From positions 1 to 64,000 of IMG/VR virus record IMGVR_UViG_3300047510_001118: DNA of 64,000 nt, one strand, 5' to 3'. The notes below the pieces were generated by a model. That model did no database searches. It was not told the DNA's origin and saw nothing but the letters and a program-made list of their open reading frames with translations. The position numbers and the translations under genes were made by a program. The first letter of the stretch is position 1. Every line of letters starts with the position of its first letter. Positions 960 through 17,960 of the stretch are shown piece by piece.

Positions 960-1051
960 TGGTACCCCCGGCGGGAGTCGAACCCACATTGGCCAATTAT
1001 CTGTTGCTCACGGGATATAAATCCGCTGTTTTACCATTAAACTACAGGGGC
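960..1051 (-). tRNA. tRNA-Ile(TAT), with 22-nt variable region
   Basis: Cloverleaf, T-loop TTCGACT, encoded CCA, anticodon loop TTTATAT. Confidence 0.75.
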
Positions 1052-2822: not shown

Positions 2823-2898
2823 TGGAGCGGGATAAGAGGCTCGAACTCTCGACCTATACCTTGGCAAGGTATCGCTCTACCAACTGAGCTAATCCCGC
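2823..2898 (-). tRNA. tRNA-Gly(GCC)
   Basis: Cloverleaf, anticodon GCC. Confidence 0.95.
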
Positions 2899-2906
2899 AT
2901 AAATTT

Positions 2907-2941
2907 TGGTGCCCCAAGAGAGACTCGAACTCTCACAGAGC
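2907..2941 (-). pseudogene. isolated 3' half of a tRNA (T-arm, acceptor 3' strand, CCA)
   Basis: GAGAG-TTCGAGT-CTCTC-TTGGGGC-ACCA with no upstream arms. Confidence 0.8.
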
Positions 2942-2945
2942 AAAT

Positions 2946-3022
2946 TGGTGCCTCAGGAGGGACTCGAACCCTCAAAATTTGGCTTCTAAGACCAACACGT
3001 ATACCAATTCCGTCACCGAGGC
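2946..3022 (-). tRNA. tRNA-Leu(TAG), short variable loop
   Basis: Leu-type D-loop GGAATTGGTATAC, anticodon TAG, A73. Confidence 0.9.
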
Positions 3023-3456
3023 GTCTTTCTTTCTTCCCACTTGGCTTTGATTGCTTCTGCTATCTTTGCTTTGTGTTCCGGAGACTTAGTTTTACCTAAG
3101 TTTCCTTTTCCTGCCTTACTTGCTGTTTTACGAGCTTGTAACGCACGAGCTTTTTCTAAACCGTGTTTTTCAACAGTTCTTTCCCAAATAGTTTTGCCAC
3201 TGTTTTCAACTTGATCTTGCCTATTCTCTTGTGCCGTCCCCCAATACAGATGATTAGGATTACCGCACTTAGCATTATGACAAGCATGACATAAATGAAC
3301 TTTATGTCCTGTTGGAACAGTTGTATCTAATAAATGTGCTAACAGTCCTTTGAAATAGTAACTGCCAGCACCTCGTTCAACACAGGCTTCATCTAACTTG
3401 AGATGGTTCTGTCTTTCTGCCTTAGGTAGTAAAATGTATTCTTCTATTAGTTTCAT
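3013..3456 (-). CDS. HNH homing endonuclease with NUMOD3-like C-terminus
   Basis: HLCHACHNAKCGNPNHLYWGTAQEN motif; GKTKSPEHKAKIAEA; start taken at MKLIEEY. Confidence 0.8.
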   Translation of the reverse strand: MKLIEEYILLPKAERQNHLKLDEACVERGAGSYYFKGLLAHLLDTTVPTGHKVHLCHACHNAKCGNPNHLYWGTAQENRQDQVENSGKTIWERTVEKHGLEKARALQARKTASKAGKGNLGKTKSPEHKAKIAEAIKAKWEERKTPR

Positions 3457-3484
3457 ACATTTATTTATGCTAAACACGACAAAA

Positions 3485-3511
3485 GCGTGTCTACCATTCC
3501 ACCACCAGGGC
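3485..3511 (-). pseudogene. isolated 5' half of a tRNA-Leu-like gene
   Basis: GCCCTGG-TGGTGGAATGGTAGACACGC, then abrupt loss of tRNA similarity. Confidence 0.75.
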
Positions 3512-3518
3512 AAAAAAT

Positions 3519-3593
3519 TGGTGCCGGATGTCGGGATCGAACTGACGACCTACCGCTTACAAGGCGGTTGCTCTACCACTGAGCTAATCCGGC
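3519..3593 (-). tRNA. tRNA-Thr(TGT)
   Basis: Cloverleaf, anticodon TGT. Confidence 0.95.
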
Positions 3594-3768: not shown

Positions 3769-3857
3769 GGTGGAGCCTGAAGGAATTGAACCTAACTGCC
3801 AGCCACCCAACAATATTATGGCAACGGATTTACAGTCCGCCGTTGGGAACAGGCTCC
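3768..3857 (-). tRNA. atypical tRNA-Tyr(GTA)
   Basis: Anticodon arm GCGGA-CTGTAAA-TCCGT, 8-bp acceptor, no D-stem, long V-arm. Confidence 0.7.
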
Positions 3858-3872
3858 AAACTTACGCGAAAT

Positions 3873-6232: not shown

Positions 6233-6415
6233 TTAACGATCAGTGTGCCAAAGAAGACTGCTCTTCTTTAATGCTTCTCTGAGTGTACGGGCTCTGTCAA
6301 ACTTATCTTGAATAAGTTTGCGTGTCTGTTCATCGCTTAATGTATAAGCAGACACGTAAGCCTGTTCAACAATCTTCTTGTTTAATTTTGTGTAATCTAT
6401 GTCTTTTGTTTCCAT
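6233..6415 (-). CDS. hypothetical protein, first gene after the attenuator
   Basis: AAGGAG SD, 60 aa. Confidence 0.7.
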   Translation of the reverse strand: METKDIDYTKLNKKIVEQAYVSAYTLSDEQTRKLIQDKFDRARTLREALKKSSLLWHTDR

Positions 6416-6427
6416 TTTTCTCCTTTA

Positions 6428-6464
6428 ACAAACAAAAACCCCAGGGTTTTTAATCCTGGGGTCC
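6428..6464 (-). terminator. intrinsic terminator (attenuator) ahead of the tRNA array
   Basis: ACCCCAGG-loop-CCTGGGGT followed by TTTTGTTTG. Confidence 0.85.
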
Positions 6465-6490
6465 TTTTGAAGTTTGAGTTTACTTTGTTG

Positions 6491-17269: not shown

Positions 17270-17371
17270 AAAAGTTCCTAAAATAAAAAGGGCTGTATTT
17301 CTTCAGCCCTAACTATGCATATTAACGCATTAGTAAACAAAACGTAAGTCTTTTTGGTGAAACTGATAAAA

Positions 17372-17395
17372 GAAAAGGCTCCGAAGAGCCTTTTC
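17372..17395 (-). terminator. terminator after tmRNA
   Basis: gaaaaggctc-cgaa-gagccttttc. Confidence 0.8.
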
Positions 17396-17752
17396 ACTAT
17401 TTTGGGTTACAAGGTATAGTTACCCCGGAGCTGCAGTTTCTTAGGCTGCTAGTTCAAAACGCTTGCCTGTTACAGCGAAGTCAGTTTTGAAATACTCAAA
17501 TGTAGATGCGTTTGCATTTACTAGTTTTGCTTGATTAACGGTCATCGCCTACCGTGTTGCCTCTTTCGCTATCTCGCCATGTCGAAACCGGTCGGGCCCA
17601 TCATAAAAGGACTAGAGCAAATACTACGAGTACAACTACTACACCTATTCCTAGATGAGTTAGATCATCGTTCATACTAATCTCCTTATGGTGGACCCGG
17701 GGGGAATCGAACCCCCGTCCACAACGCCTTCACTACGAAGGAATTACAACAA
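17396..17752 (-). ncRNA. ssrA: two-piece (circularly permuted) tmRNA
   Basis: Acceptor piece ends GGTTCGATTCCCCCCGGGTCCACCA (17689). Coding piece starts GGGCCCGACCGGTTTCGAC (17599). G3:U70. Tag ANASTFEYFKTDFAVTGKRFELAA* at 17441-17515. Confidence 0.9.
17601..17675 (-). CDS. 24-aa hydrophobic peptide inside the tmRNA intervening segment
   Basis: AAGGAG SD + MNDDLTHLGIGVVVVLVVFALVLL*. Confidence 0.5.
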   Translation of the reverse strand: MNDDLTHLGIGVVVVLVVFALVLL

Positions 17753-17756
17753 TACC

Positions 17757-17960
17757 TTAGGCTGGCTGAATATTGCTAGCCTGTTGACCTTTCATGCCCA
17801 TAGTTACTTCAAACCTTACACTCTGTCCTTCTTGTAGGCTTTTGAAGCCACTTGACTGAATCTGTGAAAAGTGAGCAAATAAGTCTGCGCCACCATCGTC
17901 CGGTGTAATGAACCCAAAACCTTTGGCGTCGTTAAACCATTTTACTTTTCCTGTTACCAT
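17757..17960 (-). CDS. cspA: cold-shock protein
   Basis: [20 protein letters not shown] motifs. Confidence 0.95.

Follow-up and report, generated by a model that had tools for sequence, protein, structure and literature searches.

The genome of a jumbo phage known from freshwater metagenomes (IMG/VR record IMGVR_UViG_3300047510_001118, 278 kb) contains a locus where a nuclease gene and a complete leucine tRNA lie between the two ends of another leucine tRNA gene. This arrangement raises the question of how a gene-disrupting element can spread without costing its carrier the gene that it destroys. The window analysed here is the first 64,000 nucleotides of this record, in which 27 tRNA genes are clustered on the minus strand between 960 and 5960. 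The initial annotation had proposed that a mobile endonuclease and tRNA unit inserted into a resident tRNA-Leu gene and restored its function with a different allele. Each prediction of this model that could be examined held.

Anatomy of the interrupted tRNA-Leu locus

In the order of the minus strand, the following features were identified.

3519..3593 (-): tRNA-Thr(TGT), the upstream neighbour and left flank of the disrupted gene.
3485..3511 (-): 5' fragment (nt 1-27: acceptor 5' strand GCCCTGG, U8 and a D arm of the bacterial tRNA-Leu kind) of the resident, disrupted tRNA-Leu(TAG) gene.
3472..3492 (-): junction hairpin, in which the D-arm 3' strand (AGACACG) pairs with cassette-borne CGTGTTT across a 7-nt loop.
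3462..3468 (-): conserved ATAAATA motif just upstream of the ATG, a possible promoter belonging to the cassette.
3013..3456 (-): 147-aa His-Me finger (HNH-type) endonuclease ORF, from ATG 3456 to the stop TGA at 3015-3013.
2946..3022 (-): carried, intact 77-nt tRNA-Leu(TAG) with a 5-nt variable loop, D stem ACG/CGT and A73-CCA; its nt 8-10 are the stop codon of the nuclease.
2907..2941 (-): 3' fragment of the resident tRNA-Leu, separated from the carried tRNA by a short spacer and comprising the end of the variable arm, the T arm GAGAG/CTCTC, the acceptor 3' strand TTGGGGC, A73 and CCA.
2823..2898 (-): tRNA-Gly(GCC), the downstream neighbour and right flank.

The carried tRNA was called by both ARAGORN and Rfam (61.9 bits). 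The two orphan acceptor strands pair at all seven positions (4 Watson-Crick, 3 G-U), and neither fragment is a chance look-alike. Indeed, the exact 25-mer of the 5' piece occurs in 66 IMG/VR contigs and the exact 28-mer of the 3' piece in 83, almost always inside intact tRNA-Leu(TAG) genes, which are 84-85 nt long in nearly all the contigs with the 5' piece. The missing part is not only the anticodon arm, as initially annotated, but also most of the long variable arm.

The tRNA repeats do break short-read assembly graphs, and Logan contigs end at the tRNA pieces. Nevertheless, contigs from runs of two studies cover 2907-3000, 2989-3515/3566 and 3486-3566 with no differences. A third study yields a single 609-nt contig spanning 2906-3513 at 94% identity, thus carrying the whole unit, and a fourth a 570-nt match. 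One of the best holders may be the source sample itself, and the recurrence of the same architecture in dozens of independent assemblies is the stronger argument against an artefact.

The protein matches Pfam zf-His_Me_endon (E 9.7e-6, 26.3 bits against a cut-off of 27), HNH_3 only weakly (1.2e-3), and several PHROG HNH endonuclease families (down to 5e-10). NUMOD3, the label given initially, was not detected in Pfam at E<=1, the C-terminal K-S-x-E-H-K-x-K-I stretch merely resembling it by eye, and no GIY-YIG match was found. A profile of 20 family members hits only I-PpoI among solved structures (E 3e-4), over 32 residues of the catalytic zinc loop. I-PpoI (E 0.06, TM 0.2) is also the best Foldseek hit in the PDB of the AlphaFold model (pLDDT 83), although no whole-fold match was significant. 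The motif CHACHN..C.NP.H.YWG..N and the H57/N78-type residues are invariant, and dN/dS against relatives is 0.07-0.25. This points to a working enzyme under purifying selection, even if cleavage itself is inferred. The gene is single-copy in the record. An upstream extension of the ORF through the tRNA piece (TTG at 3513) was rejected, since the frame is not conserved in relatives and the N-terminus M-K-L-I-E-E-Y aligns across the family.

The junction hairpin has a dG of -7.1 kcal/mol (z -2.3) in the window, and down to -13.7 in relatives. In 13 distinct sequences of close relatives, 95% of cells pair, against 20-65% in slid controls. Two pairs show compensatory change, and the covariation score is a modest 0.28 against 0.22 in shuffles (7/500). 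A relative next to tRNA-Trp has an analogous hairpin built from the D-arm sequence of that tRNA. A weak terminator or insulator is the best guess for its function, but the consensus terminator scan does not call it. The ATAAATA motif is present within 60 nt of the start codon in 45 of 80 related loci. It is exact TATAAATA in many relatives and looks like a T4-type late promoter. However, the promoter reading is an inference, and the T4-late reading is weakened: TATAAATA is not enriched in the window (3 matches against 7 expected), and the large proteins of the window match PHROGs of unknown function, not T4 families. The 20-mer around the motif is unique in the window. One subfamily has instead a sigma-70-like TTGACA-17-TATAAT.

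Recurrence, empty sites and mobility of the cassette

A protein-guided scan of IMG/VR found 24 related loci, and a subsequent profile-guided scan found 229 stretches encoding relatives, of which the best 80 were kept. In 63 of these 80, the nuclease stop overlaps or abuts a tRNA-Leu (anticodon TAG, TAA or CAA), usually lying 10 or 15 nt inside the tRNA. Most loci also have a 5' tRNA-Leu piece ending right after the D arm, followed by the same conserved junction (hairpin, then G-T-G-T-T-T-A-n-n-ATAAATA) and the ORF. Many have a 3' remnant after the carried tRNA, ranging from a full T arm plus acceptor down to 12-15 nt. Many others lack it (for example loci L054, L152 and L154), so that a right-hand homology arm is not always present. 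A near-identity search of the locus against cultured phages found only single-tRNA matches. The best cultured relatives of the protein are 43-56% identical; only one of them lies at a tRNA cluster, and none shows the split tRNA-Leu.

The two fragments are the two ends of one resident gene. Indeed, the acceptor strand of the 5' piece differs among loci and the 3' orphan changes with it, as in GCCCAGG/TCTGGGC, GCCCGTA/TACGGGC, GCGAGTG/CACTCGC, GCTCCGA/TCGGAGC, GCGACTG/CAGTCGC and GCCTTCT/AGGAGGC. Among 32 unique loci with a 5' piece and a carried tRNA, 13 have a fully complementary orphan ending in N-CCA within 130 nt, against 30 of 938 pairs (3.2%) when 5' pieces are paired with the downstream DNA of other loci. 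The carried tRNA's own 5' strand fits the orphan in just one locus.

Uninterrupted sites were also found. Two IMG/VR contigs, L011 and L028, have the same gene order as the window (Leu-CAA, Ser, Ser, Asp, Thr, Leu-TAG, Gly, Pro, Val, Asn, Ala), with a tRNA-Thr 99% identical to that of the window. At this position they carry one intact 85-nt tRNA-Leu(TAG), identical to the 5' piece of the window through nt 26. These contigs are not close relatives overall, since identity across the tRNA genes is mosaic, from 58 to 100%, and only some tRNAs of L011 are 99-100% identical to those of the window. Exact-pattern scans for closer relatives, using the Thr-Leu junction, found nothing in metagenome or viral contigs. 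About 145 contigs carry the same tRNA pieces inside intact genes and lack the nuclease. In the public runs that hold the locus, contigs joining position 2936 to 3485 through a 27-31-nt anticodon and variable arm are abundant, and uninterrupted alleles therefore co-occur with the cassette.

Interestingly, two contigs from different samples, L205 and L207, are 100% identical over about 700 nt, whereas their flanks are unrelated. The identity starts at ACACGC in the D arm, runs through the hairpin, TATAAATA, the ORF, the carried tRNA and a spacer, and stops inside the T loop of the 3' remnant. Outside these borders, the remaining parts of the tRNA pieces are allele-specific (GCCCTGG...CTAGGGC against GCCCAGA...TCTGGGC). 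This situation indicates a recent horizontal transfer, and is what repair of a break from a cassette-bearing template should leave if the conserved D and T arms are the only shared homology. The copy of the window has no near-identical twin in another genomic background, and its current mobility is extrapolated from the family. An identical carried tRNA also occurs behind nucleases that are 65-76% identical, in four different contexts, showing additional mosaicism within the unit.

The split alleles and the carried alleles differ next to the insertion point. The 5' pieces, presumably from sensitive alleles, carry the D stem GTG/CAC in about 26 of 31 unique loci, while the carried tRNAs carry ATG/CAT, ACG/CGT, GCG/CGC, GAG/CTC, TCG/CGA or GCC/GGC in 29 of 31. 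These changes preserve pairing but rewrite the DNA, which fits immunity to the nuclease. In two loci (L190 and L193) the carried tRNA keeps GTG/CAC, so the D stem cannot be the only determinant. The carried allele of the window, a class-I-like tRNA with a short variable loop, also occurs alone, with no nuclease, in at least 12 contigs, and is thus probably a working tRNA. Its charging with leucine is inferred.

A homing model and its alternatives

These observations are best explained, with good confidence, by a free-standing homing endonuclease cassette that targets phage tRNA-Leu genes and carries its own replacement tRNA-Leu. The mobile unit would comprise the junction hairpin, the ATAAATA motif, the nuclease ORF, the carried tRNA-Leu and a short spacer. 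In the proposed mechanism, which lacks biochemical evidence for cleavage, for the cut site or for immunity, the nuclease cuts the common tRNA-Leu allele (D stem GUG/CAC) of a cassette-free phage during a mixed infection, at or near the junction of the D arm and the anticodon arm. The break is repaired from the cassette-bearing genome, with the conserved D and T arms serving as short homology arms. The anticodon and variable arms of the resident gene are thereby replaced by the cassette, while its outer ends remain as a 5' piece and a 3' orphan. Nothing splices the insertion out, so the disrupted gene stays dead and leucine decoding is supplied by the carried tRNA, whose recoded D stem should make it immune.

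Among the alternatives, the best surviving one, although unlikely, is that the cassette entered this lineage long ago by homing and is now a fixed, vertically inherited relic, its nuclease being retained for another reason or on its way to decay. No near-identical copy was found in a different background, the best relative being 89% identical in protein and located at a contig end. Moreover, the ATG of the window follows ATAAATAAATGT directly with no Shine-Dalgarno sequence, whereas more distant relatives have GGAG. However, the ORF is intact, its catalytic residues are invariant and dN/dS is 0.1-0.25 against relatives. Both tRNA pieces are still nearly perfect copies of living alleles, which argues for a recent event, and the 94%-identical variant of the whole unit is present in the metagenome of another study.

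It is similarly doubtful that the unit persists mainly because the carried, recoded tRNA-Leu escapes a host tRNA-cleaving defence, the nuclease being only the vehicle. Phage tRNAs and the homing enzyme SegB have been tied to escape from Septu, a defence that cleaves the tRNA-Tyr variable loop (PMC13096335), and the carried allele of the window, which also lives alone, has lost the long variable arm. Most carried tRNAs of the family, however, keep a long variable arm of 84-86 nt, and the constant difference lies in the D stem, which fits nuclease immunity better. There is no evidence here for any host defence.

A tandem duplication followed by deletions, with no targeted insertion, is very unlikely. 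Some relatives do have intact tRNA-Leu genes on both sides of the nuclease (loci L216, L212 and the L251 group). Yet the 3' orphan lies beyond the carried tRNA and pairs with the 5' piece lying before the nuclease, an order given only by an insertion into one gene. In addition, the same junction after ACAC recurs with many different resident alleles, and the borders in L205 and L207 lie inside the pieces. A functional split or intron-interrupted tRNA, although the acceptor strands remain complementary and the 3' piece ends in CCA, is contradicted by the lack of an anticodon arm in either piece, by the absence of any group I intron or other ribozyme in Rfam at the gathering or E<=10 thresholds, and by the erosion or loss of the 3' piece in relatives. 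An assembly artefact is equally improbable in view of the contigs described above.

Relation to known mobile nucleases and biological significance

The unit would work like the free-standing homing endonucleases of T-even phages (SegF, SegG, SegE, MobE; PMC2988022): a small nuclease ORF without intron or intein and with possible regulatory signals of its own, patchily present among related phages, expected to spread by cutting the allele that lacks it with co-conversion of flanking DNA, the phage's own allele being presumably protected by sequence differences. The T-even genes, however, sit between genes and convert the neighbouring target, whereas here the unit sits inside the target gene, destroys it, leaves both ends behind and brings a complete substitute. 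The comparison with T4 SegB (PMC2330249), suggested in the initial annotation, holds for the concept only. SegB also targets tRNA genes and exploits tRNA sequence conserved among otherwise diverged phages, but it is a GIY-YIG enzyme, lies between tRNA genes and recognises the T-loop motif, whereas here a His-Me finger enzyme is found and the insertion point is at the end of the D arm. No split tRNA or carried spare copy is described for SegB, the paper containing no mention of 'pseudo', 'duplicat' or 'remnant'.

The closest concept is that of fungal mitochondrial mobile ORFs (Allomyces atp6; Glomus atp6, atp9, cox2 and nad3; PMC3630166), which insert into a gene with a diverged replacement for the displaced part. 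The native part stays downstream as an unused remnant, closer to the relatives' allele than the imported part is. Those are protein-coding organellar genes of which only the 3' part is replaced in frame, and the enzymes are LAGLIDADG or GIY-YIG. Here an RNA gene of phages is targeted, a whole gene is supplied, remnants lie on both sides and the crossover points lie in conserved tRNA arms. MobE of Aeromonas phage Aeh1 (mentioned in PMC2988022) is likewise a free-standing HNH gene splitting a phage gene, nrdA, although both halves there appear to stay functional as two polypeptides, whereas here the halves are dead and a spare gene compensates. I-PpoI, the His-Cys box enzyme of the Physarum rDNA intron, is the nearest solved active site and also targets a conserved structural-RNA gene. 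It is however intron-encoded, so that its host gene is restored by splicing, and the similarity is limited to about 32-48 residues around the catalytic zinc loop. No description of the present arrangement was found in the literature, which is weak evidence of novelty given the incomplete set of papers searched.

A more speculative possibility, somewhat less likely than not, is that the family runs a self-sustaining arms race on phage tRNA-Leu genes, each cassette killing the prevailing allele and installing a D-stem-recoded one, with nuclease variants then arising that split the formerly immune alleles. In locus L153, a 72%-identical nuclease has split an allele with the same D arm as the one carried by the window, and has brought yet another variant. 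Locus L228 splits a GCG/CGC allele, and L162 and L216 contain nested remnants. Together these suggest serial replacement. On this reading, homing drives compensatory evolution and horizontal exchange of tRNA genes across unrelated freshwater phages. As a further conjecture, since the stop codon lies inside the carried tRNA (nt 8-10 or 13-15 in most loci), RNase P maturation would strip it from the nuclease mRNA and would tie nuclease dosage to tRNA processing.

Homing endonuclease genes normally avoid harming their carrier by hiding in self-splicing introns or inteins, or by sitting between genes. In the model supported here, this unit, found in dozens of uncultured freshwater phages, shows a third solution for an RNA gene, which is to destroy the target and bring a recoded spare. 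The nuclease would also be a compact (147 aa) enzyme that should recognise a defined tRNA-gene sequence, with matched sensitive and resistant sites supplied by nature. The unit would provide a concrete case of a selfish element that moves functional tRNA genes between unrelated phages using only about 20-30 nt of conserved tRNA sequence as homology, of nuclease pressure as a possible cause of compensatory D-stem change in tRNAs, and of tRNA fragments in phage genomes as footprints of such invasions, not as annotation noise.

Additional RNA genes of the phage

Besides the disrupted tRNA-Leu locus, three RNA genes of the window deserve mention:

960-1051, minus strand: tRNA-Ile(TAT) gene of 92 nt
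3771-3858, minus strand: tRNA-Tyr(GTA)-like gene of roughly 90 nt, with a long variable region
17371-17792, minus strand: tmRNA gene

The phage encodes a tmRNA, which is scored by Rfam at 126 bits (beta_tmRNA) and 132 bits (tmRNA_permuted), and for which ARAGORN gives the tag peptide ANASTFEYFKTDFAVTGKRFELAA. The betaproteobacterial type hints at the host group. Because tRNA maturation could leave the nuclease mRNA without a stop codon, a link between the nuclease and this tmRNA is conceivable. The tRNA-Tyr(GTA)-like gene was missed by ARAGORN, and Rfam scores it only as tRNA-Sec, at 29 bits, below gathering. Syntenic contigs have a called tRNA-Tyr near the corresponding position, next to the Ser genes and upstream of Asp. 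The tRNA-Ile(TAT), detected by ARAGORN and scored at 54 bits by Rfam, is unusually long for an Ile tRNA, and a 96-nt Ile(TAT) also occurs in L229, another IMG/VR sequence.

Mosaicism and interruptions in tRNA clusters

When the tRNA cluster of the window was compared with those of the contigs L011, L013, L018 and L045, the identity between syntenic tRNA genes of different contigs was found to be strongly mosaic, neighbouring genes being 58% and 99-100% identical. This situation suggests patchy gene conversion across phage tRNA clusters beyond the Leu locus. In the contigs L009, L018, L030, L034 and L045, an 819-nt gap separates tRNA-Asp from the intact tRNA-Leu(TAG). This gap does not encode a relative of the nuclease; it could be another kind of insert. 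In a further contig, L002 (IMGVR_UViG_3300021387_000661), at about 6371-6470, the same tRNA-Leu 5' sequence continues into an anticodon loop C-T-T-A-A and is then interrupted by unrelated sequence. This looks like a tRNA-Leu(TAA) with an insertion in the anticodon loop, possibly a group I intron.

Nuclease paralogs and association with other tRNA genes

One 176-kb contig, IMGVR_UViG_3300037258_000514 (L166, the same contig as L222, L223 and L245), carries at least three paralogous copies of this nuclease within about 13 kb. In L223, the ORF runs directly into a T-arm/acceptor remnant with no carried tRNA, and an intact tRNA-Leu(GAG) lies upstream. More distant relatives of the nuclease, observed in the loci L204, L248, L234 and L245, abut tRNA-Trp, tRNA-Thr, tRNA-Ile or tRNA-Asp instead of tRNA-Leu, and in L204 and L248 the stop codon again lies at tRNA nt 8-10. 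The family may therefore have colonised other tRNA genes.
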